From NCBI GenBank assembly GCA_965644295.1, contig CBFFRP010000578.1:1-64000 (forward strand): a stretch of DNA of 64,000 bases, given 5' to 3'. The stretch comes from Paraphysomonas bandaiensis (Eukaryota > Protista > Chrysophyceae). Shown here piece by piece: positions 1 to 60,600 of this stretch. The notes beneath the pieces are model-generated. The model ran no database searches, was not told the DNA's origin, and saw nothing but the letters and a program-made list of their open reading frames with translations. Positions within the stretch are counted from its first letter, which is position 1, and each line of letters begins with the position of its first letter. A program made the translations under genes and the position numbers.

Positions 1-222
1 ACACACGATAAAGGCGAATTTCATATCACACAAAAAGAACGGAAGTGGTTGCACCTTGGTGCTTGCGGCGACGCACAAGCAGCTTTCGTAGCGTTAAATA
101 GTAGGATAAAAGAGTTTGTATTGATTAGTTACGGGTAGTGGTCTAACTAGTATGACTAGCATTCTTCTAGCCACTAATTGATGCAAGGTCTCAACGCCTA
201 TTGCTAAATAATCAGACATTCA
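1..222 (+). mobile_element. 3' end of non-autonomous retroposon family copy (rest lies left of window)
   Basis: Reverse complement of 18097-18318 and of the matching end of the 22177 copy; ends ...AATAATCAGACATTCA at 222. Confidence 0.9.
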
Positions 223-610
223 CTACTATGGCTATATCGTCCCGCGCTTAAAATCCTCATGATGTTGAAAACTTAATATTAGATTGTATAGCTATTTTAG
301 TAGCTTGCTTGCTGTATTAAGGTATAGATGTTTCCTGATTCACATTAAGAAAACAAATGGTATGTATACTGGCCGTGTATGATTTGGGAATAACAATTGC
401 ACCATAGGTCAACTCAAACAATAATTCCCTAATTTTATATATATAATAGCTACAACAAATTCACTCCAAACTCAGATGAATACTGATAAAATAGCAACTG
501 CGAGGTGTTGAAATTCGTACAAAAGTGTGATGATGAATGTGAACAGTTGTAGTCGCACGAAGGGCTTCTTATTGTCTTAATTAGCATATCATCATCACAT
601 TTATATACAA

Positions 611-13150: not shown

Positions 13151-14052
13151 TTACAGCCATGCACATTTATTCCAAAAATAATGCAGCACTCCATAGGTCA
13201 TTGTTCCCTTCGGAGGATTCGTTAGTAGGTTTGTTAATCGTGGACATGCAACACATGTGAGTGGGTACACTAATGTGGCGAATATATAAGGAAATGCGCA
13301 CGCAAAAAATCCAAGTGATACAAAAGAAATCTGCAGGTTGACCAGGGCTCCAATAAAAGTAACAATTGCAACTACATATTCACCAACAGATTCGGCGACA
13401 GCAAGTTGCCATATTGCACTGATAAATAGAAGTGTTTTTAAAATACCGATGGACGTGCACTGTTGAAAGAGAAAATAGGCTCGAAGTCCACCGAACACAT
13501 CCAAACCACTTTCATCTAACACAGGGTTTAGCTCCTTACCTGGGTTAGCAATCATATACCAATAGTTATACATTGAAAACGGCACATATCGCGTCACGCT
13601 ACGCGTCTCGTTATCCACACGCCACGTTAAACCCGATTTACACTGACAGATATTGCAGATAACACTACCAAGAGTGGACTCTTCAGTTGAGGATTTAGGC
13701 TTAGTTATTTTAATATTTTGATATATCGGAACAAGTACCCACGCCATTATTGCATAGGCAGCAGCATAAGATACCATAAGGGTATCTAGTAGACCAGGCG
13801 ACATATAACCGCCATAGATAATAACAGCCACCTCATATATCCTCGAACACATTTGATAACGCGCCCACTACAATTCAACAGACTTATATACAAATACTCC
13901 CCCATATATAGCCTTACCACAACAGGAGATACAGATATACACAGAATCTGACGGGGCATAGCCTCCACAACTGGGGGGAGTTTCTCGCTACCTGAGTTAG
14001 GAGGATTTAATTTGACTGCATCTCCTTCTTCTAATCCAAGCGATTCTTTCAT
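13151..14052 (-). CDS. Hypothetical multi-pass membrane protein
   Basis: GTAAGG...TTGTAG intron joins ORF 13786-14064 in frame (SPVV|WARYQMCSR) to ORF 13151-13852; several hydrophobic segments; start uncertain. Confidence 0.7.
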
Positions 14053-14106
14053 TTTGAATACCAACTATGACAAAAGTTAATGTGAGATATGAAGATACTT
14101 CTCCAT

Positions 14107-14386
14107 GTGTATGTATGTATGTATGTATGTATGTATGTATGTATGTATGTATGTATGTATGTATGTATGTATGTATGTATGTATGTATGTATGTATGTAT
14201 GTATGTATGTATGTATGTATGAATGTATGTATGTATGTATGTAGGTGTATGTATGTATGTATGTATGTATGTATGTATGTATGTATGTATGTATGTATGT
14301 ATGTATGTATGTATGTATGTATGTATGTATGTATGTATGTATGTATGTATGAATGTATGTAGGTAGGTAGGTAGGTAGGTAGGTAT
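14107..14386. repeat. Compound (GTAT)n/(GTAG)n microsatellite, about 280 bp
   Basis: Seen directly; accounts for the YIHT/MYVC ORFs. Confidence 0.98.
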
Positions 14387-14532
14387 GTGTACCTATACGT
14401 ACGTGGGTAGGTACATTTCGGTACAGTATGTAGGTACAGCAGTACAGTAGAGAGTCGTTCATTGTAGTGATCTGGATCCGATTCGTGTTTGCGCTGCATG
14501 ATAGTCGCCCCCTCACTGCTCCCATAGAGCCA

Positions 14533-17596: not shown

Positions 17597-18093
17597 ATAC
17601 TCGTATGTATCGAAATAAATATTCAAATGGACATCTTGACATATGTCTCTGTTGTGCATTTTTACCTGATTATCTCTTCATGGTGCTTTAAATATAGTTT
17701 TGAGACCTTTTTGAATCCGTCTATCAGTTAAAATGTTAGATGAAGTACTTTGATCGCTATATTTTAATGAAATGGATTAATTTTTGTTACGGTAAGATCG
17801 GTGTCTTAACCGACTGTGCAACAATTGAAAAGTAAATTAATATCAGTTCATTCCACTATACTTGTACCTTGTACCATTATTTAACCCTAAATACCTTGTG
17901 TTAGTTCTGTTATGTGAAGTCAATGTGTTAAAGACGTATATAGTTATATTTAACCACGGGTGTTGGAATACGTATGGTTCTCTAAGATAGTACTGTAGAA
18001 TACGTTAAATACAATGTGAAAAACAGTACTACGTAGTCAATACTCAAAGGTGCTATATAGCTATAACATAACAGAAGTTGACATTATTTGCTA

Positions 18094-19813
18094 TATTGAA
18101 TGTCTGATTATTTAGCAATAGGCGTTGAAAGCCTGCACCAATTAGTGGCTAGAAGAATGCTAGTCATACTAGTTAGACTACTACCCGTAACTAATCAATA
18201 CAAACTCTTTTATCCTACTATTTAACGCTACAGAAGCTGCTTGTGCGTCGCCGCAAGCACCAAGGTGCAACCACTTCCGTTCTTAGTGTGTGTTATGAGG
18301 CTCGCCATGATCGTGTGTCCTGGGACTCACCGGCGCGTGTGATCTGGAGGTCTCCTCTTGGGATGAGACTCCACTCGCTATATGATAGATAGCCTTATGT
18401 ACCTCACGGGGACTGACTTATTAGCCTTATGGCAGTTAGGGGAAACAGTAATATGCCCTTCTGAGATTGGCGATCTGGTGGCCTTCCTTTAGGCATTGTT
18501 CCAAGTGGCTCGGAGGTATGTGGATGAAGGTCTTGCAAAAGGTTATGGCCTACTGTGAAGAAGCGTCGAAATAGGCTCTTTTGCTGTCTTAGCCAGCGGT
18601 AGAGAACACATGCAAGAGGGTGTATAGCTGTACAGGGGTGGGATATGAGGGTCATCCGGTGTGTCCAGCAACAGGGAGTCGAGAGGGAGTGTGATGGTGC
18701 AAAAGAGGCAACATCTGATTGAGGAGAGGGGGACTGCGCAACAGAACTAGGTCTGCCAAGGTCGGGTACTCTGATAGACCTATGCACGAGATGATGATGA
18801 TGATGGTCTGGAGGAGAGACTCGGACGTCCTCAGCTACCCTTGTTAGTGTCTGTGTTGGTGCAGGGGGGTACAGGCTGAGGCATAGAGTGTGTGTGGAAG
18901 GAAGATGACGGCAAGGTGTCAGAGACGGAGGGAGGGGAGATGGTTTGTCTGGAGGTTCTCGAGGAGGAGGTAGAGTGTAAGGTGCGTGTGTATGACAGTG
19001 CAGCGGTGCTATGAGTGTGTTGGACAGAGAGAAGAGCCTGTACTGCAGGTATACAGGTACAAGTACATGGTGATGTGTCCAACAGTACAGGTATACAGGT
19101 ACATGGACAGGTACATGGGACGAAGTGAGCTGTGTGGTGTACTGCAGTATATTTGCACCGTATTGGAATGGTATACATCCTGTAGGACACAGTAGTACAG
19201 TAGTCGGGTATACCGTATGCGGAATACTGTGTCCATCCAATGAGATGTGTGGGCTGTGGGGATGATAGGCGAACAGGGTGAGGGGGTGCTCTGCTTGGTG
19301 CATAGACGCACAGACTAACCATGCTGGGTTGGTTTGTGCGGTCGTCAAGAAATGGTCCTGTCTTACAAGGTAGCGGGGCCGATGGAGAACATGGGTGTTA
19401 GCGAATGAACAAGTGGACCGTTTTCGAGTGCCTACCCGCACGAGCCATGCGATGAGTGGTTGTAACCGTAGAGAACGGTGTGTGAGACAGATGCGTCTAC
19501 AAGGGAGATGTCCAATAGGAACAGACAGCGCTGCAGTGGTGCAGGCACTTGGTTTAACTGACGGCGTTAGTGAGGAGAGTGGTTGCAAAGCCACGTTATC
19601 AAACGGGGAGCGTGTACAACATGGTAAGACAAGATGTTTGTCGGCAGTGTGGTGTGTTTCAAAATGTTGCCCTGCTTGGAGAGAAGGGAACAGTCTGAGC
19701 CCGGACCCGCTGATGGGACACAACCACGGTCTCAATGGAGACATTGAGCTTGGAGCGAGCTAAAAAGGTATAACTTTTTGTTGAACTGTGTTTTTACCAG
19801 AAGAGGAAGAGAA
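18094..19813 (-). mobile_element. 1.72-kb non-autonomous retroposon, copy A
   Basis: 15-bp TSD TGACATTATTTGCTA at 18079-18093 and 19814-19828; empty-site paralog near 44407; homologous end to end with copy B. Confidence 0.92.
18404..19744 (-). CDS. 446-codon His/Pro/Leu-rich ORF of retroposon copy A, no recognisable domain
   Basis: ATG about 70 nt from the element 5' end; same start and stop as in copy B; protein function unproven. Confidence 0.45.
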   Translation of the reverse strand: MSPLRPWLCPISGSGLRLFPSLQAGQHFETHHTADKHLVLPCCTRSPFDNVALQPLSSLTPSVKPSACTTAALSVPIGHLPCRRICLTHRSLRLQPLIAWLVRVGTRKRSTCSFANTHVLHRPRYLVRQDHFLTTAQTNPAWLVCASMHQAEHPLTLFAYHPHSPHISLDGHSIPHTVYPTTVLLCPTGCIPFQYGANILQYTTQLTSSHVPVHVPVYLYCWTHHHVLVPVYLQYRLFSLSNTLIAPLHCHTHAPYTLPPPREPPDKPSPLPPSLTPCRHLPSTHTLCLSLYPPAPTQTLTRVAEDVRVSPPDHHHHHLVHRSIRVPDLGRPSSVAQSPSPQSDVASFAPSHSLSTPCCWTHRMTLISHPCTAIHPLACVLYRWLRQQKSLFRRFFTVGHNLLQDLHPHTSEPLGTMPKGRPPDRQSQKGILLFPLTAIRLISQSP

Positions 19814-20514
19814 TGACATTATTTGCTAAGGTTTACTATTCTCAACTGATAAGATGAAATTATAAACATTACATGATAAAGAACCTAAGTTGTGTTCGAT
19901 GTGTTCAACACCATTCATTTACTACTATAGTGTACAAACCACACACTCAGTGATCGTATCCTGTATAGTCATCCACTTCTACTTCAGTTTCATACTACAT
20001 AATATAATGTACTAATTACATATATATCTTTCGATCCTTGCATCTCACATAATACTGCACTCAATTGCAAGTATATAGAATCTTCAGATCTCAACATAAC
20101 ATTGAAACTGAAGTATTATATCATGACGATTCAAGATACGGAAGATGAGCAGTGGTTTACATGAACGAAATAATTTGTTAGCATTGGACATTTATTTCAC
20201 TGAAGTTAACTTTGCTCTACATGTAAACCTTAATCTTGCTGTTGAACACAATGCACTTTCAAGTAAGAAATCATAATTATTATTCTGAACACTCCACTAC
20301 ATATTCGTGTAACATATGTTGAAACATCTGTCCTCAGCAACATCTGTTTCTCATGTTCTTCAGTCAGTTCTATATCTTGTATAGTCACACATCAGTAACT
20401 GAATTTAATTCCTTTGTAACTATAATCACCGGTTACACCTATGAGTTGACACTACCTATTGCACACAGATAACTCACTTCAATTGCACAATATAGATCAC
20501 ATCATATTGCAGAA

Positions 20515-21160
20515 CTCAACACTCCCACTCAATTGGATGTAGTTAACCATTCTAAAATTTGTGAAGAACATTGCTATCGGATACGCAACCACCGAACCTC
20601 ATAGGACACTGGTGGACGTATGACTCCGCTGGTATAGCTAGCTCCCACCATTCATTCACACCTAACTAGTTACGACGAGCTCTCTTTACCTTGGGTACCT
20701 CTGCGATAATTTGTTCCCCCAAGATTTCGCTCCCTCTGTTCAATGAATATTGGACCACACAAAGCCTTGGTATATATATCAGCCACCTGTTGTCGATTGC
20801 TCACATGAATTAACTTCGCGGTATTAAACTGTTCGGGATCTACATGCTCTTTAATCATATGATACTTAATCTCAATATGTTTTGATCGTTGATGTTGCAT
20901 TGGATTTTCCGATATATCCTGAGCACTTTTTGACTATCCAGGAATAATGGTGTGGGCTCGTCAATTTTCAACCCTACTTCTCCAGTCACCCCCCGAGACC
21001 ATATCATTTCCTGTAATCCGTTATATAAGCATTGATACTCTGCTTGCATAGTCGATGTAGCTACAGTAGACTGAAGTTTGGAAACCCACGATAGTGGCCC
21101 TCCAGCTCCAAACATAACAATATTATTGTAATACATTTTGTTGCTGCGAATGTACACGAC
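20515..21160 (-). mobile_element. Ty1/copia remnant: frameshifted RNase H, polypurine tract and start of 3' LTR
   Basis: LSWVSKLQSTVATSTMQAEY, RSKHIEIKYHMIKE, QVADIYTKAL; frameshift near 20930; minus strand TGAGTGGGAG followed by TGTTGAG at 20521. Confidence 0.88.
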
Positions 21161-21769
21161 TGTATTCTTCGTCCTGAGAGTAGTGCTGCATAATTAATAT
21201 ATTATATTTTGGTATTATGGACCGATTGATGATATGGTGCACCGCACATGGAGTTATTCAATCATTTTTCTATTTTCCGAAGTGTTGTTTTGCCACAGCA
21301 GCAGTAGCGACCTCGAATGTGGCGGCGGTTCCTGGATGAAAGATTTAACTGCAGGACACGACGATTTCCCCAATCGAAGTGGAGGAAACACCGCCGCAGC
21401 TGCAATCATTGATAGATCAAACACTGTTATCGATTTCTCATAACAGAAAAATAGAAGATACGTTCCTATAACTGATGACACGATGACACCTAATTTCTAA
21501 AATTCAGAAAAGAAATATTTTTGAGATATAAGAGATTAAGAGAGCTGTAGGCCTCCCCCAGAGAGAGAGGGAGCTCCCTTACCTCCCCGGTAAAGAGAGA
21601 GGGAGCTTAAAATTGTCATTTTTCAGATTCTAGGAATTTGCCCCCACAGGTGTCATCGTGTCACCAGAAGGGGATTTGACGTAGATTTTATATGATAGCA
21701 TCGTAACTCTCGTGTTGACACCAAAATAATTCACGTGCCTAAACCAGTATACCCCTTTAGTGTATACCA

Positions 21770-21845
21770 ACACACGTGTCGCTTCAGACAGACTGCAACC
21801 ATGCCTTCTGTGAGGACTGCTTACAGAATCTCTATAATACAACTG
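21770..21845 (+). pseudogene. RING-finger-like fragment
   Basis: TDCNHAFCEDCL matches the C-x-H-x-F-C-x2-C core of C3HC4 RINGs; flanking Cys pairs not found in frame. Confidence 0.45.
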
Positions 21846-22176
21846 AAGATGTTGAAAAAATGAATAAGATGAGTCCAGCAAGTAAAATTAATTATCTATC
21901 TAACAAATCTTGCATCTATTCAGAAAAAAATTATCTCTTTAATGGAACTCGAAAGGCACAATAATCCGTTAGAACCTGCTGCCCCTATTGTAATGCCAGA
22001 TGAATATGATGTTTTGGTTTCCGACATCAGGGAAACAGATTTCGTTGATATTGGATCAGAATTGGGTGTCGGTAGGTTAACGCCAACAGATATTGATAAA
22101 ATTTCTTTCCCAGTTGATGGAATTATGTTTGGAGGCTCAACAAGAATATTCGTTCCGTTAATAGTAACAATAAGAA

Positions 22177-23893
22177 TATATATTGAATGTCTGATTATTT
22201 AGCAATAGGCGTTGAAAGCCTGCACCAATTAGTGGCTAGAAGAATGCTAGTCATACTAGTTAGACTACTACCCGTAACTAATCAATACAAACTCTTTTAT
22301 CCTACTATTTAACGCTACAGAAGCTGCTTGTGCGTCGCCGCAAGCACCAAGGTGCAACCACTTCCGTTCTTAGTGTGTGTTATGAGGCTCGCCATGATCG
22401 TGTGTCCTGGGACTCACCGGCGCGTGTGATCTGGAGGTCTCCTCTTGGGATGAGACTCCACTCGCTATATGATAGATAGCCTTATGTACCTCACGGGGAC
22501 TGACTTATTAGCCTTATGGCAGTTAGGGGAAACAGTAATATGCCCTTCTGAGATTGGCGATCTGGTGGCCTTCCTTTAGGCATTGTTCCAAGTGGCTCGG
22601 AGGTATGTGGATGAAGGTCTTGCAAAAGGTTATGGCCTACTGTGAAGAAGCGTCGAAATCGGCTCTTTTGCTGTCTTAGCCAGCGGTAGAGAACACATGC
22701 AAGAGGGTGTATAGCTGTACAGGGGTGGGATGTGAGGGTCATCCGGTGTGTCCAGCAACAGGGAGTCGAGAGGGAGTGTGATGGTGCAAGAGAGGCAACA
22801 TCTGATTGAGGAGAGTGAGACTGCGCAACAGAACAAGAGTCACTGAGGTCGAGTACTCTGATAGACCTATGCACGAGATGATCGTCATGATGATGATGGT
22901 CTGGAGGAGACACTCGGACGTCCTCAGCTGCCCTTGTTAGTGTCTGTGTTAGTGCAGGGGGGTACAGGCTGAGGCATAGAGTATGTGTGGAAGGAAGATG
23001 ACGGCAAGGTATCAGAGACGAAGGGAGAGGCGATAGTTTGTCTGGGGGTTTTCTAGGAGGAGGTAGAGTGTACTGTGTGTGTGTATGACACTGCAGTGGT
23101 GTTATGAGTGTGTTGGACAGAGAGAGAGAGCTGGTGATGTGTCCAACAGTACAGGTAGACAGGTACATGGACATGGTGATGTGTCCAGCAGTACAGGTAG
23201 ACAGGTACATGGACATGGTGATGTGTCCAACAGCAGTAGAGGTATACACGGAATGGTATACATCCTGTAGGACACAGTAGTACAGTAGTCGAGTATACCG
23301 TATGCGGAATACAGTGTCTATCCAATGAGATGGATGGGCTGTGGGGGTGATAGGTGAACAGGGTGAGGGGGTAGCCTGCTGGGTGGATGGACCACAGACA
23401 AACCATGTTGGGTTGGGCTGGGTTGTCGTCAGGAGACGGCCCTGTTGTGCAGTGGAGAGGTGTCGAGAGGAGACAGGGGTTGCAGAGAAGGTACATGGGG
23501 GCCGTTTGCGTGGATCTGCTCGCACGAGCCATGCTGTAAGTGGTTGTATCCGTAGAGAACCGTGTAGGAGACGAAGGTGTCTCCTTAGGTGATAGCATAT
23601 GCATGCGGTCAGCGCTGCATTGGTGCAGGCACGTTGTTTAACTGAAGTAGTTGAGTAGGGTGAAGGTTGCAAGGCCAGGCAGGGGGGCTTGGAGCGTGTA
23701 CAACATGGTGTGACAGGTAATTTGTCGGAAGCGTGGTGGTCAACAAAATGCAGCAGTAAGGGAGTGTAAAAGGCCCTGGGCACACTGATGTGACTCAGCC
23801 ACGTTCTCAATAGAGACATTGGGCTTGGAGCTGGTTAATAGGGTGAAACTTTATGTTGGACTGTATTTGCCATCGTAGGGCAGAGAATTTTTC
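22177..23893 (-). mobile_element. 1.72-kb non-autonomous retroposon, copy B
   Basis: 11-bp TSD AACAATAAGAA at 22166-22176 and 23894-23904; (TA)n tail; interrupts a reading frame. Confidence 0.93.
22491..23819 (-). CDS. 442-codon ORF of retroposon copy B
   Basis: Colinear with ORF 18404-19744; contains about 42-bp tandem repeats near 23133-23240. Confidence 0.45.
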   Translation of the reverse strand: MSLLRTWLSHISVPRAFYTPLLLHFVDHHASDKLPVTPCCTRSKPPCLALQPSPYSTTSVKQRACTNAALTACICYHLRRHLRLLHGSLRIQPLTAWLVRADPRKRPPCTFSATPVSSRHLSTAQQGRLLTTTQPNPTWFVCGPSTQQATPSPCSPITPTAHPSHWIDTVFRIRYTRLLYYCVLQDVYHSVYTSTAVGHITMSMYLSTCTAGHITMSMYLSTCTVGHITSSLSLSNTLITPLQCHTHTQYTLPPPRKPPDKLSPLPSSLIPCRHLPSTHTLCLSLYPPALTQTLTRAAEDVRVSPPDHHHHDDHLVHRSIRVLDLSDSCSVAQSHSPQSDVASLAPSHSLSTPCCWTHRMTLTSHPCTAIHPLACVLYRWLRQQKSRFRRFFTVGHNLLQDLHPHTSEPLGTMPKGRPPDRQSQKGILLFPLTAIRLISQSP

Positions 23894-24440
23894 AACAATA
23901 AGAACAACATCTATTGTTGTGATATTCCTTTTTGACACAAGTTCACCTAATTCATATCTGCGTACGGACACGCTTTTTGCTTTAGGCTTTACTGAAAGTA
24001 TACCAGGCTCAACAAACGTGGACATACATGGGACGTCATTGAATGTACATCATTCACAGAGCCATTTTGAAAATGTTGATCTATTAGGACAAGATTTCAT
24101 GAGGGGAGCAGGGATCGAGGCTGTTTTAAGGTATTCGCGTATGTCAGTAACATTTGCAAAGGCCAAATGTTGATCTATTGGGTTGGAGAAAAAATCTGAT
24201 TTGTTGAGTTTAAGTAATTGATTAATTGTAGAGGGTAGAGGGGTATACCGGTTTACATAGCATGGTCACAGCATATTTAAAAAGGGATATAGATTTAGCA
24301 TGTAGATAGAGTTTACTATTTAACCGTTGGTTGTTGGTGGGTGCAATGCTATTGTACCAGACAAACTCTAGAGAAAGAAAAAAGAACTTCGTAAATAAAA
24401 ATTCACGAAAAGTTAAATTAGCAGCTTCTCTGTATCAATT

Positions 24441-36256: not shown

Positions 36257-36772
36257 TATATATTGAAAGTATATTGAAAGTCTTATTATTAGCAATAGGC
36301 GTTAAAAACCTGCACCAATTTAGTAGCTAGATGAATGCCAGACAAACTAGTTAGACCTCTACCTGTAACTAATCAGTACATACTTTTTTATCATACTATT
36401 TAACGCTACGGAAGCTGCTTGTGCGTCGCCGCAAGCACCAAGGTGCGACCACTTCCGCTCTTAAGGTGAACATCCCGGATGCTTGACTTCAGCAGGCAGC
36501 CCAATACCCCGGTTACCCTTCAGGTGGGCCCTGTCCCGGATGCCCTTGAGGTGGGCCCATTCCCGGATGCCTGTTTATTCGTCAGGGCCCAAAGACGTCT
36601 ACACAAGTGACAATTGGTGTACCTTGTACCACACAAGCATTCGGCTATGAGTGGGCAGAAGAATAATATCTGCTGACTATGTTTGCGGCTCACGTTAGTT
36701 TTTTAGAGAGAATCTCTCCGGTACTTATCCCCCAGAACACCACGAAAAGGTGCGAGTCCGACTTTGTTGAGG
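36257..36772 (-). mobile_element. 516-bp retroposon family copy C with a different body
   Basis: 15-bp TSD GAAACTGTACCTGTA at 36242-36256 and 36773-36787; shares the ~200-bp 3' end; TCCCGGATGC repeated three times in the body. Confidence 0.88.
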
Positions 36773-47084: not shown

Positions 47085-47102
47085 GATTAGGGTTAGGGTT
47101 AG
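47085..47102 (+). repeat. Short interstitial telomere-like (TTAGGG)n tract
   Basis: GATTAGGGTTAGGGTTAG, absent from the other family copies at this position. Confidence 0.65.
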
Positions 47103-47385
47103 ATCGACTTCTACTTGTAACTAACTGCTGCAAATTCTCATATCCTACTATGTAACGGTACGGAAGCTGCTTGTGCGTCACCGCAAGCACCAAGGTATGA
47201 CCACTTCTGGTCTTGTGTGTGAAGGAGAAGCTCTCTATGGACGTGAGTCCATGAATTACGAAAGGATTTAGTCAGGGGGACGCCCCTTAGGGTAGGGCTC
47301 CGCAGGACTTTGTGGAGGCACTGTATTGCTTCCTCCTGCGTTTCCTACTGCTTGAAGAGCTAGATGACGATATCGTAATCATCAC

Positions 47386-51600: not shown

Positions 51601-54600
51601 TCATCACTTTCCAGCACAGAAACTTCCAGGACTGGGGTCGTCTTATCTGCTGCTGTCGTAACCAGCTCAACAGTAGTCTCAGCTTTCGAAATCACATTGC
51701 TGATAAGAACCGTGAATTCATACGTGGCTGACGAATCCAAAGTGTTAGCGGGAATCGTAATCACTGATTTTGTACTCGAGACTCCATCTAAACCACATTC
51801 ATCAAGCGCAGGGGAAACCTTAATACAATCCCAACTATATGACAGATTTGATTCTTCTCCACGTTGTGTTCCCACACTTTCGTCGTAAGAAAATGACGCG
51901 TCCAGCTCAATCACATCACCCGCCGACTTGGTTACATAATTACCCCCGCGAATTAAAGGTACAATCGACCCATCTAGAACATAGACTCTCATTGAAGATG
52001 AAGCTGATGTCCCAGCTACTACATCAGTAACCACCAAAGTAATCTTATAATCGGAGCCTGAAGCAAACGAATACGGCGCCGCGATGAAATTGAGAGGACT
52101 GGATGCCGTGTTAATGACGCTAGTTATTGTTTTTCCCGCACTCGACACAGTCCACTTGTACGACAAAGTACTACTTGTCGTGGACGTACCGCTACAAGTA
52201 GAGGGCGATGCTCTGGCGTGAATTGCAAATGTTTCATACGTGAATATATTTCTTCGACGGCTGCCATCGAAAAGAACATGGGGGACAGTTGTTTTCAATC
52301 TCTTAACAACAGTAACTGAAGACGAGTCAGACGCTCCCAAGAAATTTTTCAACATTAACTTGAATTTGTAGGTTCTTCCAGAAGTTAAATATGAGCTCGG
52401 AATCTGTCGACATCGAGATTTTTCTGAGCAGGTCGAAAAAGCACTGTTCAAATAAGCGGTGACTTTTGCATCTGCCCCCTGAGTAAGTGACTCCGCAGAC
52501 CATACAGCTTCAGTCCAATTTCTTCCTCCACTTCCACTAGATTGTTCGTAGGAAAGTTGCAGCGACGAACAGGCAGATATCCACTGAGGGGCGGTTATTC
52601 GCACAGTTGGAATAATTGGATCTAGTGGAGCTTCAATTTCTACTTCCGCAGCAGGAGATGCGCCATACGATGGGCAAGTCGTCGAGCCAGCAGTACAAGC
52701 CGCTGTTACCACACCGGGAAGTAAACTAAGTGAACTTCCGACTGAAGGGACAGGTGAAAGAAGCGCTGGTAATGCAGCCTTGATCTCTCTGTCAGACAAG
52801 AAAGTACAAGATGAATCACTCGCTCCAGCAAAGGAGAATATTCGGTCACATGAAAACACTGTATCAAATAAACCCCCATTCATTCCCATATCTGTTCTAG
52901 AGTCGAAAGTAATCACAAGAGACGCACCCGAATTCGAAAATTTGGCCGCTAGCAGCGTAGGGGGTTCAGGTGTAACATCAGTTCCATAGGCTTGAATTAC
53001 AACATACTCATCTGCACTGTATGATGACGACACATTAACGTAGTACTCTTCAGCACTATCTCCTGACACATTAAGTGTCACATAATAGCACCCAGCATCT
53101 AAGGGGTATATTCTAAACGCCTTGGAAGCATCGATAGACGATGTACTGGTAAACAATATCTGCGAGGGAATAACACTAGCGGTAGAGACCGTTAAACTGT
53201 CGGGTGATATCAGCAAACTGCACTGCCCGGACTGTGGCAGGGGCGCGAAATAAGTTTGCACACCAATTTCTACAGCTTTCGACGGCCTGTCGTTTAATAT
53301 TATAGAAAATTTCGAGGACGACTGAGCCGTAGGAATACGATAACCAGAATACGATAGGTATATGGCCTTTAGTCCGAGTATGGTCGATTTTACCGCCATG
53401 TCATATACGGTACTTAAAGCAGTTTTCTCGGCGCCGGATTCTTGCTTTAAAACTGACTCAGTATAGCACAAAATCGTGTAATTGACACCAATAGCCAATT
53501 TAGTCAATTCCACTTCGAAACTACCCGGTCCACTCGCATAGCCACGAACCCCACTAACCATGATACTTTCCACACTCGTGATTACTGGAAGTCCGTCGTA
53601 TGCAGCACAATACAGATACCCTTCGGCAGAAATATTGTGTAACGTGACAACAATACTTCTCATGTTGAAATTAGGAGCAGTGGAAATATGAGAAAAAGTA
53701 GGTGGAGTTGTTAGTGATTCAATATCCATACACATACCCGAGGATCTACCACCGACACCATAACAAGCCACGTCCGTAGGGAATGCTAAATTACTGCCAC
53801 AATCGCAAGGTGTTTCACAATCAACACATACTCTTAACGTAGAGTCACTACACATTTCAGTTTTCCATGAATGACCACTGCATTCCACAACACCATCAAC
53901 TTCTTCGCTCAATGCAGTGTAGAATGAAGTTAAACTTTGCTCGTCATCACAAACAATATGCCTAGAATAAGAGTTCGCCCTTGAGCAACCAGAGCAATTA
54001 GCACCAGCAACTACCACGGATACTGAACGTGGTATTTTGAAATTGTAATCTACAGTTGCGTTCGCCAAGAAGCTTCGCCACATACTCGCACCTCCACTAC
54101 GCTGATCTCCATACCACACACTATCCTTGTAACGGTAATCGCACGATGGCCCGTTAATAATCTCATCAACAATGCTTTCCGCCAATTCGATATCGTATGT
54201 AATTGTAGGTGTCGCAGAAGCACGTACTGTGGGCTTGCTTGTCGGGAAATAGGTTGGCAAAAAGGTATCATCGAAGCTACAACTATTCAATAACTGGTAA
54301 AATTGAGCCGAGATATTAGGATCAAAAATACTAATAGATAATGTAGATGAAATCTGTGCTTTTGTGGAAGAACGGATTAGCAAATCACCATCAACATCCG
54401 AAGAAAAAAAAGAATGAACATTCACATGAATATTGGGATATGAGACAACATTCACAGACGACACAGACTGCCCAACAAATGGTGAACTGTATAAAACACG
54501 AATAGCATCATTTAGAAAATCCGTCACAAAGAGAACAGGACGATTCAGGTGTGAATAAGCGTAAGATATAGTCAATGGATAGGAAAACTCCGCTACATCA

Positions 54601-57600
54601 CCCCACCCATCACGATACCCTCCAGCAGTAGTGTATACATCACTGCCATTACGATCCTGAGAAAAGTCATAGCCAGCATACGTACTCACGTAACCCGAAT
54701 ACACCGAATACTTACGAACAGTCATCGAACCTACATTGAAATCATCGAATTCACTTCCAAACTCAGAAAAACTTTCAGTAAAATACAAAGAATCACCCAC
54801 GGGATCATACGTAATGCTAGACGGAAATGCCAATAGGGCACTCGTACCAAATCCATCCTGCAGATATGGAGTGGGATCATCAGAACCAATGCCTCCATAC
54901 GTCACACTAGGATCTCCAGCCAAAACCGTTATCTCAGAGTAGTGACTCACACCCATAGGTATCCGTAACAATAAATTCAAACCCAACGATACTGTCACAT
55001 ATATCATGCCATGGCTCTCCACAGCTGCTACCCCAAATATATACACATTATTAGGCCAAGAATTAGCTGTCTTGAACGCAGTTAATGCTGTGTACTCATT
55101 ACGAACATATGCTGATATCGAGGTGGAACTCGTGTCTCGAGTAAGGTTAAACAGCTTCGTCCGATCAGTCACATATAGATACGATCCGGCCTTATCAACA
55201 TCCATACCAGGAAAGCGACCTCCAGTGCTTAGGCCATCAGATTCAGTGAACACGAATCTATCTCCAGCACTATTCGATACCGTGTATACATATCGTGTGG
55301 CGAAGTCAAGTATACGAATGAGTTTGCTATCATCGCTACAAACATATAGTAAATCTGAGTCGTTGTCATACTTCATTTTGCTGACTTTGCTGAAAGATGT
55401 GTTACTGTTTTCAAAGTTTCCATCTTCACTGCCGCCACTTGGTCCTCCTGTTACAAATTTTGTCTTTGACGAGAAGTCCAATATATTACCATTCGTTATC
55501 GTCCCATTTACAAATAATATTTTGCTTGCAATCGAAACAAAAAAACCGGATACTCCAGAGTAATATCCAGGCTCCACACCAACTGCTCCATTTATATTTG
55601 CTAAAGTGGAGACGTTGACGACTCTACCATCCACGGTTGGCAAAACCGAAGGATTACAAGTCACAGTAGGATGGATAGTTGGCAAAATGCTTGGTAAAGG
55701 AGACGGAAAAAGGGTAGGTGGGAGAGTATTATTCACAGCCTTAGACCCAACCGCAGTATAAACAACGCGAATAGCATCATTTAGAAAATCCGTCACAAAG
55801 AGAACAGGACGATTCAGGTGTGAATAAGCGTAAGATATAGTCAATGGATAGGAAAACTCCGCTACACCACCCCACCCATCACGATACCCTCCAGCAGTGT
55901 AATATGAACCATCCTCATTACGATCCTGAGAAAAGTCATAGCCAGCATACGTACTCACGTAACCTGAATACACCGAATACTTACGTACAGTCATCGAACC
56001 TACATTGAAATCATCGAATTCACTTCCAAGCTCAGAAAAACTTTCAGTGAAATACAAAGAATCACCCACGGGATCATACGTAATGCTAGACGGAAATGCC
56101 AATAGAGCACTCGTACCAAATCCATCCTGCAGATATGGAGTGGGATCATCAGAACCAATGCCTCCATACGTCACACTAGGATCTCCAGCCAAAACCGTTA
56201 TCTCAGAGTAGTGACTCACGCCCATAGGTATCCGTAACAATAAATTCAAACCCAACGATACTGTCACATATATCATGCCATGGCTCTCCACAGCTGCTAC
56301 CCCAAATATATACACATTATTAGGCCAAGAATTAGCTGTCTTGAACGCAGTTAATGCTGTGTACTCATTACGAACATATGCTGATATCGAGGTGGAACTC
56401 GTGTCTCGAGTAAGGTTAAACAGCTTCGTCCGATCAGTCACATATAGATACGATCCGGCCTTATCAACATCCATACCAGGAAAGCGACCTCCAGTGCTTA
56501 GACCATCAGATTCAGTGAACACGAATCTATCTCCAGCACTATTCGATACCGTGTATACATATCGTGTGGCGAAGTCAAGTATACGAACAAGTCTTTGTTC
56601 TGCAGAAACAGTGACGTATAACGTATTTGTTGAGGCGTCATACTTCATCGTTCCAATATTTTCGAATCCTACTTCATTACTTTCAAATGATCCATCTTGG
56701 TTTCCATGCGCAGTTGAACCTCCAGCAACCTTAACAATAAAGGGAGGGTGGTTTGTGGCGGAATTTTCAATGGTGGATTGGTTGATAAACATTATCTCGT
56801 TAGTGATGGTGGTATAAAATACTCCCGACATGTTCATGTAACTACCATATTCAACACCAATAGATCTATTTGCTGTAATCGCTACGGATGACACATTTAT
56901 AAATTTGTAGTCCACTGTGGGAGTCAGAGTTGGGGGAAAAGTCGAGGGACTCAGAGTAGGAATTGAAGTTGGTATGGGTGAAGGCGCCACCGATACCACC
57001 TGGGTTGGTAGCATACTAGGGGCAGAACTAGGAAATGATGACGGAAGACAAGTTGGTAAATCCGTCGGAAATTTAGTTGGTATAACCGTTGGTCTCAATG
57101 TAGGCGAAATCGTCGGTGGAGAAGACTCTATCGATCTTACAACTCCTACTCCAGTATAAACAACGCGAATAGCATCATTTAGAAAATCCGTCACAAAGAG
57201 AACAGGACGATTCAGGTGTGAATAAGCGTAAGATATAGTCAATGGATAGGAAAACTCCGCTACACCACCCCACCCATCACGATACCCTCCAGCAGTGTAA
57301 TATGAACCATCCTCATTACGATCCTGAGAAAAGTCATAGCCAGCATACGTACTCACGTAACCCGAATACACCGAATACTTACGAACAGTCATCGAACCTA
57401 CATTGAAATCATCGAATTCACTTCCAAACTCAGAAAAACTTTCAGTGAAATACAAAGAATCACCCACAGGATCATACGTAATGCTAGACGGAAATGCCAA
57501 TAGAGCACTCGTACCAAATCCATCCTGCAGATATGGAGTGGGATCATCAGAACCAATGCCTCCATACGTCACACTAGGATCTCCAGCCAAAACCGTTATA

Positions 57601-60600
57601 TCAGAGTAGTGACTCACGCCCATAGGTATCCGTAACAATAAATTCAAACCCAACGATACTGTCACATATATCATGCCATGGCTCTCCACAGCTGCTACCC
57701 CAAATATATACACATTATTAGGCCAAGAATTAGCTGTCTTGAACGCAGTTAATGCTGTGTACTCATTACGAACATATGCTGATATCGAGGTGGAACTCGT
57801 GTCTCGAGTAAGGTTAAACAGCTTCGTCCGATCAGTCACATATAGATACGATCCGGCCTTATCAACATCCATACCAGGAAAGCGACCACCAGTACTCAGT
57901 CCGTCGTACTCAGTGAACTCGTAAGTATTTCCAGTGACATTCGATACTGTGTATGCAATACCTGATTTTAAATCTAATGATCGTATTTTTCGATATGTAT
58001 CATCACACGCATATATAATATCATTAGCATTATCATGTATTATGCTTCCAATTGTTGGTTCTCCACTGAGATTGGGTCCATCCTGGAAGTCCTCTGTACT
58101 AATATTGACAATGGTAACAAACATTGGTACTCTGTCTGAACGATATGACCCGATACCGGTGTCATTGACGAACAACACTGCTGTTCCAGTTGTAACAAAA
58201 AGTCCCGATGCACCCATGTATAGTCCTGATGCTAAACCAACCATACCCTTCATATTCTCAGATAGAGTGGACACATTGACAAACCGATAATCGTGTGTCG
58301 GGGATAATGTCGGACCTGTCGGGCTACAAGAGGGTGTGGCAGTGGGGACTGATGTCGTTGGCAGCGAAGTTGGGGTAGAGGAGGGTAAGACAGAGGGAAT
58401 GACAATTGGGCATATCGTTGGAGACGAAGTAGGACTCCACGATGGTGAAAGAGATGGAGGCGATGATGGTACATCAGTTTGTGCAGCTGAGGGGTGTGAG
58501 GTGGGTACATATGTAGGGCTACTACTGGGATGACATGAAGGATTAGTGGTTGGACTTGGAGTAGGATCACATGTCGACAACAGAGTAGGCTTCAGTGTCG
58601 GCGTAGTGGTAGGATGTCGAGTGGGGGTGGCAGAAGGAGAGCATATTGGTCCCATAGTCGGCTCAAAAGTAGGAGTTCCACTTGGTAAAAAGGTTGGAGC
58701 GGCTGAAGGTGTGCAACTCGGGATGCCAGTTGGATGTAAAGACGGTGTATGGGAGGGAGTATGAGAGGGAATAGCCGTTACACTAGCGGTTGGGTAGGCG
58801 GTCGGGACTCCAGAAGGGCTACTGGACGGATTGATACTTGGCACAATAGAGGGACAAAAAGATGGAAAACATGATGGACAAATCGTTGGCCTACTATTAG
58901 AAGGCTGAGATGTCGGGAAAGAGGTTGGGGAGTATACGGAATACACAACGCGAATAGCATCATTTAGAAAATCCGTCACAAAGAGAACAGGACGATTCAG
59001 GTGTGAATAAGCGTAGGATATAGTCAATGGATAGGAAAACTCCGCTACACCACCCCGCCCATCACGATACCCTCCAGCAGTAGTGTATACGTCACTGCCA
59101 TTACGATCCTGTGAAAAGTCATAGCCAGCATACGTACTCACGTAACCCGAATACACCGAATACTTACGAACAGTCATCGAACCTACATTGAAATCATCGA
59201 ACTCACTTCCAAGCTCAGAAAAACTTTCAGTGAAATACAAAGAATCACCCACGGGATCATACGTAATGCTAGACGGAAATGCCAATAGGGCACTCGTACC
59301 AAATCCATCCTGCAGATATGGAGTGGGATCATCAGAACCAATGCCTCCATACGTCACACTAGGATCTCCAGCCAAAACCGTTATCTCAGAGTAGTGACTC
59401 ACACCCATAGGTATCCGTAACAATAAATTCAAACCCAACGATACTGTCACATATATCATGCCATGGCTCTCCACAGCTGCTACCCCAAATATATACACAT
59501 TATTAGGCCAAGAATTAGCTGTCTTGAACGCAGTTAATGCTGTGTACTCATTACGAACATATGCTGATATCGAGGTGGAACTCGTGTCTCGAGTAAGGTT
59601 AAACAGCTTCGTCCGATCAGTCACATATAGATACGATCCGGCCTTATCAACATCCATACCAGGAAAGCGACCTCCAGTGCTCAGGCCATCAGATTTGGTG
59701 AACACGAATCTATCTCCAGCACTATTCGATACCGTGTATACATATCGTGTGGCGAAGTCAAGTATACGAACAAGTCTTTCTTTGTCACCACAGGCGAATA
59801 GGATGTCGGAGTCATCGTCGTATTTCATTCTGTTTACGTCATCGAAATGGGCTTCACCGTTGTCGAAAGAACCATCTGTACTTGCTTTTACACTTCCACC
59901 AGCAACATGTATAGCAGATATATTGAATCTGATGTTCGTGGATTCGACATCGTACTTGTTAATAAACACTATCTTATTGGCGATTGAAACAAAAACACCA
60001 GCCATATTTATATATTGTCCCGGTTCAACCGAAACAACACTACCTAAACTGAAATAAGTAGAAACATTAATGACTGTGTTATCCGTTGTAGGAAGAACGG
60101 ATGGCAAATTAGTAAGACCTAGAGAAGGCAACATAGTCGGATTACGTGAAGGGAACATTGTTGGCTTCCTAGTTGGAGGACTTGTAACTGCTGAAGGAAC
60201 AGCACCAATACCAGTATAAACAACGCGAATAGCATCATTTAGAAAATCCGTCACAAAGAGAACAGGACGATTCAGGTGTGAATAAGCGTAAGATATAGTC
60301 AATGGATAGGAAAACTCCGCTACACCACCCCACCCATCACGATACCCTCCAGCAGTAGTATATACGTCACTGCCATTACGATCCTGTGAAAAGTCATAGC
60401 CAGCATACGTACTCACGTAACCCGAATACACCGAATACTTACGTACAGTCATCGAACCTACATTGAAATCATCGAATTCACTTCCAAGCTCAGAAAAACT
60501 TTCAGTGAAATACAAAGAATCACCCACGGGATCATACGTAATGCTAGACGGAAATGCCAATAGAGCACTCGTACCAAATCCATCCTGCAGATATGGAGTG

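Follow-up and report, generated by a model that had tools for sequence, protein, structure and literature searches.

How do two copies of a repeat that encodes no reverse transcriptase come to have ORFs of 446 and 442 codons, when some 90 codons in the middle are read in different frames? The question arises in a window of 64,000 nt at the start of contig CBFFRP010000578.1 of the chrysophyte Paraphysomonas bandaiensis (assembly GCA_965644295.1), which contains both copies, here designated A and B. The two elements, with their ORFs, untranslated regions (UTR) and target-site duplications, are located as follows.

18092-19813, minus strand: copy A, a complete retroposon lacking reverse transcriptase, A-type, 1722 nt, with ends set by ~40 genomic copies
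19814-19826 and 18079-18091: target-site duplication of copy A, 13 bp, GCAAATAATGTCA
18404-19744, minus strand: ORF of copy A, 446 codons plus stop
18092-18403, minus strand: 3′-UTR and tail of copy A, 100% identical to that of copy B
18327-18362, minus strand: counterpart in A of the LINE ORF-end remnant, PKRRPPDHTRR-stop
22179-23888, minus strand: copy B, a complete retroposon lacking reverse transcriptase, B1-type, 1710 nt
Flanks of copy B: target-site duplication, 11 bp, TTCTTATTGTT, the 5′-junction having 5 additional nt, GAAAA
23820-23888, minus strand: 5′-UTR of copy B, 69 nt
22491-23819, minus strand: ORF of copy B, 442 codons plus stop (the stretch under study)
22179-22490, minus strand: 3′-UTR and tail of copy B
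22414-22449, minus strand: LINE ORF-end remnant in the 3′-UTR of B, out of frame, reading PKRRPPDHTRR-stop

A and B are non-LTR retroposons of about 1.7 kb without a reverse transcriptase. The sequence-only reading had noted that they share start and stop positions and that both end ~70 nt upstream of the ATG; by measurement their similarity stops 69 nt upstream of the ATG, and this is a true 5′-end flanked by target-site duplications. The terminal sequences are (A)TTCTCT...CAATATA, and A and B do not differ over their last ~600 nt. The flanking sequences differ in all 44 full-length copies sampled, 39 of which have a detectable target-site duplication of 7 to 14 bp, and 0 to 6 extra nt are present at the 5′-junctions. 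The 3′-end is fixed, with every match stopping at one base, and 5′-truncated copies, that begin for example at query positions 519, 591, 742 and 766, are common. The B-type 5′-head occurs 90 times in the 62.5-Mb genome, in some cases at the 5′-ends of LINE-2b copies. Neither ORF has a Pfam hit and neither copy has a reverse transcriptase or endonuclease, in agreement with the earlier designation of the element as non-autonomous. A scan of positions 17900-24100 against Rfam (E up to 1) returned no tRNA, 7SL, 5S or ribozyme match, and classification as a SINE was rejected as there is no tRNA, 7SL or 5S head recognised by Rfam and the head is the 5′-end of the LINE itself. A copia fragment, unrelated to either copy, is located between them (20855-21157). 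That A and B might be solo LTRs flanking this fragment was also rejected, given their different duplications of 11 to 13 bp and non-LTR ends; they have no TG...CA termini, 4 to 6 bp duplications or pairing as LTRs around gag-pol, and are independent insertions. Contigs assembled from polyA marine metatranscriptomes tile the element, not its flanks, and are uninformative with regard to strand, ends and translation.

Judged from their alignments, A and B are internal-deletion derivatives of giant LINEs with a single ORF that encodes SET, endonuclease and reverse transcriptase (RT) domains, and the ORF of each is an in-frame patchwork of the N- and C-terminal ends of the LINE protein. The parts that have been kept are the 5′-end, with the 69-nt leader and the LINE's own ATG, ~240 to 350 codons from the N-terminal part of the protein, which is poorly conserved, and a diverged copy of the last ~100 to 150 codons together with the 3′-tail. 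LINE-1 is a ~12.3-kb element with all three domains, and the 5′ ~580 nt and last ~275 nt of A are 89% and 85% identical, respectively, to LINE-1 and to its 3′-end. For B, the exact 30-nt head is positioned ~5.85 kb upstream of RT matches on several contigs, and the B-like N-terminal 240 aa begin open frames of up to 3021 aa (LINE-2b); the likeness of LINE-2b to B2 is based on scores and coordinates only, with the B2-like N-terminus scoring equally in the long frames of LINE-2b and in the short elements. The C-terminal part aligns with the end of the LINE ORF via an L037 intermediate, and at least two deletions were in frame. The family has a mosaic structure with sharp block borders, and the many differences between A and B in the 5′-region exist because these 5′-blocks match different LINE lineages, the head of A resembling LINE-1 and the B-type head and N-terminus being present in LINE-2b. 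The 37-nt ORF-end remnant is found exactly in 62 places, only in short elements and fragments, and no LINE with the exact B-type 3′-UTR was identified. In the LINEs, the N-terminal region has to stay open because the reverse transcriptase lies downstream of it in the same ORF, and much of the openness of the A and B ORFs is inherited from the LINE.

In the middle of the ORF, A encodes HPLTLFAYHPHSP... where B encodes TPSPCSPITPTAH..., and both the ORFs and frame tracking bear out the earlier observation that ~90 codons are in different frames with the original frame restored at SLSNTLI. It also holds that each of these peptides recurs in an alternative-frame ORF of the other copy (19009-19311 in A and 23053-23604 in B). 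Nucleotide alignment places A and B in phase up to approximately codon 146 of A and codon 143 of B, then out of phase until a CT run just before SLSNTLI (codon 239 of A and 233 of B), and in phase thereafter. The features involved are as follows.

19305-19315, minus strand: site 1 in A, GTCTGTGCGTC, with a +1 insertion (extra C) at the start of the swap, ~codon 146
23390-23399, minus strand: site 1 in B, GTCTGTGGTC, in the uninserted, LINE-like state
19017-19038, minus strand: site 2 in A, CT run GGCTCTTCTCTCTG, 1 nt shorter than that of B, which restores the frame
23110-23132, minus strand: site 2 in B, CT run AGCTCTCTCTCTCTG
19011-19317, minus strand: stop-free stretch of A (element nt 497-803), in which TAA, TAG and TGA are absent from all forward frames
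23104-23320, minus strand: stop-free stretch of B (element nt 569-785), likewise free of stop trinucleotides in each forward frame
23132-23233, minus strand: tandem array in B, 2.4 units of 42 nt (14 codons)

The middle of B is in the frame of the LINE, and A has a +1 insertion that is compensated ~90 codons later in the CT run. The extra C is present in A-type and L038-type elements and absent from B, B2, L037 and LINE-1. In other A-type copies the CT run is 2 nt longer than that of B, with an identical effect on the frame, and in all A-like variants the length of the swapped interval modulo 3 is that of B. Two independent compensations in the CT run are not claimed, as the shorter state is derivable from the longer by a 3-nt deletion. 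The CT run is likely hypermutable. Compensation was possible because the interval, made up largely of the 42-nt tandem units, is stop-free in every frame, and the stop-free stretch of A covers almost all of the swapped interval; the equivalent stretch of LINE-1 has stops in both other frames. Differences in the number of 42-nt units also account for ORF classes of 428, 442 and 456 codons. Given exactly two frameshifting indels, the chance of a compensated, stop-free pair is ~0.16, a value estimated by reasoning and not computed. There is no need to invoke dual coding or programmed frameshifting in this region, as the alternative frame is open mainly by virtue of the stop-free 42-nt units.

Retention of the ORF was evaluated in two samples of full-length copies. 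In the first, 23 of 29 have an ORF of 428 to 456 codons, and in the larger sample 28 of 44 have at least 396 codons from the common ATG. As most copies are very young, retention in a single copy says little. All of the propagated classes sampled, with ORFs of 396 to 484 codons that cover ~78% of the element, start at one ATG and stop no more than ~300 nt from the 3′-end. Two 1-nt deletions in C6/C7 runs, common to two and to three independent insertions, break the ORF and, if real, indicate that broken elements still transpose. A comparison of shared and private indels for lengths in multiples of three yielded too small a number of clean events beyond the repeat region, and is partly circular when limited to intact ORFs.

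The amino-acid sequence is almost neutral, with dN/dS about 0.6 to 1.0. For the N-terminal part dN/dS is 0.62 to 0.79, and for the C-terminal part 0.6 to 1.1, with none significantly below 1 in pairwise tests. The structure predicted for the ORF B protein has a mean pLDDT of 27.7 and no fold, and a protein word search among 5.8 billion entries returned only two near-identical proteins and no further relatives. The peptide would be under almost no constraint and is probably unfolded. The private variants of 36 B copies comprise 4 nonsense, 49 nonsynonymous and 22 synonymous changes and conform to neutral expectation (3.1, 50.5 and 21.4, respectively), and shared variants number 0 nonsense, 65 nonsynonymous and 34 synonymous. 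On the internal branches of the C-terminal tree there is no nonsense change among 99, a result with a probability of 0.05 to 0.06 in composition-weighted simulation, and the statistical case within the RT-less lineages is marginal because this probability is no lower. The strongest statistic, P = 0.005, comes from comparing the entire ORFs of A and B, and is due mostly to divergence in the 5′-region that stems from the LINE lineages. The C-terminal half that is specific to the short elements is still open in lineages that have diverged by 8 to 15%; its shared variants are 12 nonsynonymous to 12 synonymous, and the internal-branch N/S is 1.4, with about 2.35 expected. The compensated frameshift is a hint, and no proof, that translation is more important than its product, and selection for openness within the RT-less lineages themselves is only suggested. 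The proposal in the sequence-only reading, that selection may act on translation, with ribosome loading, NMD avoidance or access to nascent RT as candidate mechanisms, and not on sequence, therefore stands in part: a non-random ORF is kept in every propagated subfamily sampled and dN/dS is near neutral, but much of the openness is inherited from the LINE, the simulated probability is marginal and two ORF-breaking deletions are shared.

Several explanations for the ORF have to be weighed. A C/A-rich strand is stop-poor, and has here a G fraction of 0.16 to 0.17, stretches of 216 to 307 nt that are stop-free in all frames and alternative-frame ORFs of 100 to 183 aa, but it is hardly credible that chance would in this way produce both an ORF of ~440 codons and alternative frames that are open. 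Frame 0 has no internal stop, whereas the other two forward frames have 17 and 9 to 11, the number expected from composition. For each copy 6000 randomised sequences were generated, half of them mono-nucleotide shuffles and half first-order Markov sequences. Their longest open runs had a median length of ~115 codons and peaked at 317 to 373, and none of the 6000 reached 447 codons, as compared to the 447 to 451 observed; composition alone does not account for the ORF. The ORF is also collinear and in frame with the LINE ORF, and a shortage of stops due to composition, rejected as an explanation of the complete ORF, applies only to the local stop-free stretch that allowed the frame swap. A more serious alternative, which we nevertheless consider unlikely, is that inheritance and youth suffice: the ORF would be a passive leftover of the LINE with deletions that were in frame by chance, 5′-blocks refreshed repeatedly from LINEs by recombination or template switching, and a 3′-half from one recent source with too little time to have acquired stops, all without selection on translation. 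The sharply bordered mosaic, the identity of the last ~600 nt, the 62 exact occurrences of the 37-nt segment, the equal scores of the B2-like N-terminus in long and short elements, the exactly neutral private variants, the marginal probability in the tests specific to the short elements and the frameshifts common to two or three insertions are all consistent with this. It accommodates less readily a +1 insertion that has been compensated, with the frame kept in every A-like length variant, a C-terminal half that remains open at 8 to 15% divergence with no nonsense among 99 internal-branch changes, at least two in-frame deletions, and propagated classes that, without exception, begin at the common ATG and end ~300 nt or less before the 3′-end.

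It is also conceivable, and in our estimate improbable, that the product is a functional protein, namely a disordered ORF1- or Gag-like RNA-binding or assembly factor identical to the N-terminal module of the LINE polyprotein, which would have to be made in cis as in half-L1, with the middle a dispensable linker that tolerates either frame. In its favour, the N-terminus is common with the LINE and contains patches of conservation, for example SLRLQPL.AWLVR...RKR. The C-terminal segment YRWLRQQKSRFRRFF, which is basic and aromatic, does not vary between subfamilies and has a helical prediction of low confidence, and the 12-to-12 ratio of shared variants and reduced internal-branch N/S point the same way. 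Against this, dN/dS was never significantly below 1 in the pairwise tests, there is no Pfam family, no confident fold and no relative that is not near-identical, and ~90 residues have been replaced wholesale by those of another frame. The segment YRWLRQQKSRFRRFF is invariant also at synonymous sites, because the whole of the last ~600 nt is identical, which points to constraint at the RNA level. The account we favour, and regard as somewhat probable, is that the ORF is an in-frame remnant derived from the LINE with a frame that has been kept open by selection on translation and not on the peptide. The elements are inserted by target-primed reverse transcription with the LINE proteins supplied in trans. 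The A/L038 lineage gained the +1 insertion at about codon 146, a length change in the CT microsatellite ~90 codons further on restored the frame, and the frameshifted version then continued to transpose. In active lineages, selection for translation of the RNA would keep the frame open to within ~300 nt of the 3′-end, candidate reasons being that the RNA would escape nonsense-mediated decay and that it would mimic the LINE mRNA, on which ribosomes terminate beside the 3′-tail. More tentatively, and with considerable doubt, translation itself, and not the peptide, may be the cis requirement for trans-mobilisation of an RT-less LINE derivative. Ribosomes would then have to read from the LINE's ATG to a stop codon near the 3′-tail, so that the RNA evades nonsense-mediated decay or imitates a LINE mRNA at the point where new LINE protein engages the 3′-end, and active lineages would keep any open frame and lose sequence constraint. 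With such a requirement, replacement of ~90 codons by another frame would be harmless and frameshifts would be rescued by compensating changes.

LINE proteins have a cis-preference for their own mRNA, and the known means by which non-autonomous elements reach them are untranslated RNAs, as in SINEs and SIDEs, or a functional ORF1, as in HAL1. The A/B family is abundant and young, and all that it keeps is an open frame, the sequence of which is almost unconstrained. With frame-swapped and length variants and identifiable parent LINEs, it provides a natural experiment that sets "must be translated" against "must encode a protein". If selection on openness fails, it is still a worked example of a long ORF in a repeat that is an inherited in-frame remnant, and such a remnant should not be annotated as a gene.

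Among known elements, the R2 and R1 SIDEs (short internally deleted elements) of Drosophila (Eickbush and Eickbush 2012, PMC3414825) are similarly non-autonomous non-LTR elements generated by internal deletion, with the 5′- and 3′-ends of the autonomous element kept, mobilisation by target-primed reverse transcription, no pol III or SINE-type origin, and hybrids between element lineages with signs of template jumps. They are, however, ~0.5 kb, rDNA site-specific, begin with a ribozyme and have no ORF, whereas members of the A/B family are 1.5 to 1.8 kb, dispersed, and contain an in-frame LINE ORF remnant of ~400 to 480 codons. Non-LTR SIDEs are stated to appear rare (PMC3414825), and the A/B family has at least 90 full-length 5′-ends. 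Both ends are homologous to an autonomous element and the enzymatic core is missing, but the element is not non-coding, and the A/B family is thus a variant of the SIDE kind and not a typical member. RIME and NARTc, the partners of ingi and L1Tc in trypanosomes (PMC5814959, PMC1874656), are likewise dispersed, abundant, truncated LINE versions without RT that share the first tens of nt of the LINE, the internal promoter region, and its 3′-end. They are much shorter (0.26 to 0.5 kb), with a 77-nt Pr77 promoter/ribozyme as their hallmark, and retention of a long fusion ORF is not a defining feature.

HAL1 (half-L1) is LINE-derived and non-autonomous, keeps a LINE coding region without RT, in the form of a recognisable, conserved ORF1 protein, and depends on RT in trans. 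The A/B family resembles these mammalian elements (mentioned in PMC5753468) in the retained coding region, missing RT and dependence in trans, but its ORF has no recognisable domain, is almost neutral and tolerates replacement of ~90 codons by another frame. Of the purifying selection expected for an ORF1- or Gag-like protein of the HAL1 type, only a weak synonymous excess in the C-terminal half was found. Alu RNA is an untranslated, 7SL-derived pol III transcript that docks on ribosomes via SRP9/14. Access to the LINE machinery is, in the ribosome-linked hijack of L1 by Alu and in L1 cis-preference (for context see PMC2666806), tied to translation and ribosomes, as may also be the case here; unlike for Alu, the candidate link in the A/B family is translation of the parasite RNA itself.

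A search of the organism's own genome (62.5 Mb, 669 contigs) for copies of the two RT-less retroposons A (1722 nt) and B (B1-type, 1710 nt) gave about 40 scored full-length matches among 2126 candidates. The 3′ base is identical in all matches, 5′ truncation is frequent, and the exact 30-nt head of the B type occurs 90 times genome-wide. For comparison, 44 distinct full-length copies were extracted. The element termini are (A)TTCTCT...CATTCAATATA, the flanks differ in all 44 copies, a target-site duplication of 7–14 bp is detectable in 39, and the 5′ junctions carry 0–6 additional bases, often A. These duplications and junction bases, with the fixed 3′ end, are marks of target-primed reverse transcription. 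A search of the region found no match to tRNA, 7SL, 5S or ribozyme families, and a Pfam search with both ORFs gave no family match for either.

ORFs of the two copies
18404–19744, minus strand: ORF of copy A, 446 aa
22491–23819, minus strand: ORF of copy B, 442 aa

The frame of these ORFs (frame 0) has no internal stop, with 17 and 9–11 stops in the other forward frames and 16–24 in the reverse frames of A and B. Randomised sequence does not yield ORFs of 440 codons; for each copy, the longest open run among 3000 mono-nucleotide shuffles and 3000 first-order Markov sequences was ~115 codons in the median and never exceeded 373, versus the 447–451 observed. The ORF is kept in most copies, 28 of the 44 having 396 or more codons that start at the shared ATG. 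Similarity between A and B ends 69 nt upstream of the ATG, close to the ~70 nt first read from the sequence, and DNA identity climbs from about 65–70% at the 5′-end to 100% in the last ~600 nt. Codon-phase tracking on a multiple alignment bore out the sequence-only reading that ~90 middle codons are read in different frames. The ORFs are in phase as far as codon ~146 of A and ~143 of B, out of phase from there to a CT run just 5′ of the motif SLSNTLI (codon 239 in A, 233 in B), and in phase beyond. The peptides quoted in that reading are each found in the alternative-frame ORF of the other copy (19009–19311 in A, 23053–23604 in B).

The A protein matches the beginning of far longer open frames in the same genome, which belong to giant autonomous LINEs. 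The complete LINE-1 (L032/L041/L042, at G000:C146:358235-370593) is ~12.3 kb long with a single ~4000-codon frame, which one stop and one frameshift interrupt in this copy. LINE-1 encodes a SET domain (PF00856, E = 2e-9) immediately upstream of an endonuclease (PF03372, E = 1e-9) and a reverse transcriptase (PF00078, E = 8e-15), with repeated cysteine-protease-like segments further upstream. LINE-1 copies, with further ones in L031 and L033–L036, are 98–99.7% identical, and the lineage is therefore very young. The first ~580 nt of LINE-1 are 89% identical to A, with an ATG at position 70 in common; at the other end, ~275 nt of LINE-1 match the A and B tail with 85% identity. The RT-region proteins of additional LINE lineages are 75% and 55% identical to that of LINE-1. 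Two of these, LINE-2a and LINE-2b, were characterised by coordinates and scores. Several contigs (C20, C25, C231, C440) have the exact B head ~5.85 kb upstream of a LINE-2b RT match, and LINE-2b frames of up to 3021 aa begin with 240 N-terminal aa that resemble those of B (88% to B1) and score equally to those of the B2-type short elements. As the 5′ blocks of A and B match different LINE lineages, the many amino-acid-changing 5′ differences, correctly noted from the sequence, are mostly differences between lineages.

No long frame of the genome contains the final 202 aa of the B ORF. Via an intermediate of the L037 type of short element, these residues align to the LINE-1 ORF at its C-terminal end (TQ.RT.AA... 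to PKGRPPD). A 25-aa piece of the short-element ORF matches LINE-1 residues ~872–897 in frame, and the 3′ UTR has a second, out-of-frame remnant of a LINE ORF end (PKRRPPDHTRR-stop). A LINE with a 3′-end exactly matching the B tail was sought and not found. From these alignments, the short-element ORF is an in-frame patchwork of both LINE ORF ends, and the short elements are LINE derivatives with internal deletions. The short element has the motif P-[KR]-x-[RK]-P-P-D at three places, two within the ORF and one in the 3′ UTR remnant (22414–22449, 22539–22562 and about 23034–23060 in B), and the LINE ORF has it at two or more (LINE-1 residues ~880 and the C-terminus). It may have served as the microhomology for the internal deletions, or be a signal.

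Where the frame swap starts, LINE-1, B1, B2 and L037 have GTG-GTC in common, and A-type and L038-type copies have GTGCGTC, a +1 insertion. Since the former are without the extra base, the B frame is ancestral, the LINE frame, and that of A derived. The CT run that restores the frame is 1 nt shorter than that of B in L001, L002 and L038 and 2 nt longer in L003, L044 and L043; these states are 3 nt apart, so that one compensation and a later in-frame change may account for both. The swapped interval is 322, 295, 373, 304 or 337 nt in A-like variants and 313 nt in B, all equal modulo 3, and lies inside a stretch without TAA, TAG or TGA in any forward frame.

Stop-free stretch, all forward frames
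A: element nt 497–803
B1: element nt 569–785
L037: element nt 578–885

Much of this stretch is made up of 42-nt tandem units, whose copy number gives ORF classes of 428, 442 and 456 codons. At least five A-type insertions have differing target-site duplications, and the frameshifted version has thus transposed.

In the family alignment, blocks of 63–83% identity directly adjoin blocks of 96–100% identity with sharp borders, as exemplified by B1 and B2 (alignment columns 300–500), by L037 (distinct over the first 300 columns, identical to B1 in the middle and LINE-like at the C-terminus) and by A (LINE-1-like 5′ 580 nt and a B-like remainder). The 3′ third (18092–18690 in A, 22179–22780 in B) is 100% identical between A and B, with one 37-nt segment exact at 62 genomic places, and the 5′ two thirds combine diverged blocks. 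A uniform 3′ third on a mosaic 5′ part suggests that reverse transcription switched templates or that one 3′ module swept recently. The same 3′ terminus, 80–93% identical and without the ORF body, is present in further insertions at 1–225 (plus strand), 36270–36569 and 47100–47214.

The sequence-only reading had proposed that selection may act on being translated rather than on protein sequence, an idea that dN/dS near 1 with few stops would support. By the Nei-Gojobori method dN/dS is 0.6–1.1 for the C-terminal 200 codons (seven lineages, none significantly below 1) and 0.62–0.79 for the N-terminal 145 codons (A, B1, B2 and LINE-1 pairs). Structure prediction from a six-sequence alignment had a mean pLDDT of 27.7 with no residue above 70, and a protein word search of 5.8 billion proteins returned two near-identical sequences only. 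The subfamily-invariant segment YRWLRQQKSRFRRFF...PKGRPPD falls in DNA that is identical at all sites, which points to a constraint at the RNA level.

Variants among 36 independent B-type insertions (nonsense, nonsynonymous, synonymous)
Private: 4, 49, 22
Neutral expectation, private: 3.1, 50.5, 21.4
In at least two insertions: 0, 65, 34

Selection on openness of the frame gains some ground from the absence of nonsense changes among the shared variants and, in a tree of 55 C-terminal halves, on the internal branches (58 nonsynonymous, 41 synonymous); terminal branches have 84 nonsynonymous, 52 synonymous and 2 nonsense. Simulation with composition-weighted substitutions, however, put the chance of zero stops in 99 changes at 0.05–0.06; for A versus B it is 0.005 over the whole ORF and 0.028 for the N-terminal part alone, which is largely LINE history. 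Two ORF-breaking 1-nt deletions in C6/C7 runs, common to two (L019, L053; alignment column 212) and three (L021, L025, L028; column 1119) independent insertions, count against a strict open-frame requirement; they could be propagated broken elements or homopolymer assembly errors. That the short elements are selected for an open frame is thus plausible and mildly supported rather than demonstrated. Marine metatranscriptome contigs (polyA-selected and cDNA, two studies), many mismatch-free, tile almost the entire element, with zero coverage of the flanks. They are uninformative as to strand, ends and translation, and a multi-copy DNA contaminant is possible.

The trypanosome RIME/ingi and NARTc/L1Tc pairs have a like design, a truncated LINE with common ends. 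HAL1 reportedly retains a conserved ORF1, whereas the ORF sequence drifts here. Among described kinds, the SIDEs (short internally deleted elements) of R2 and R1 come closest (PMC3414825). Non-LTR SIDEs are called rare, and those of R2 and R1 are without an ORF (PMC3414825). The short elements are distinguished from these known kinds by a long in-frame remnant ORF, open despite sequence drift.

Between A and B, and unrelated to either, is a copia-type polyprotein fragment (RNase H/integrase end; 20855–21157, minus strand). Elsewhere in the window, an 8-nt unit forms a long array at 14036–14420, where overlapping register copies number at least 36, and 54466–62005 and 62773–63924 hold six ~1.3-kb tandem modules, with cores 90–99% identical, and three 426-nt repeats.
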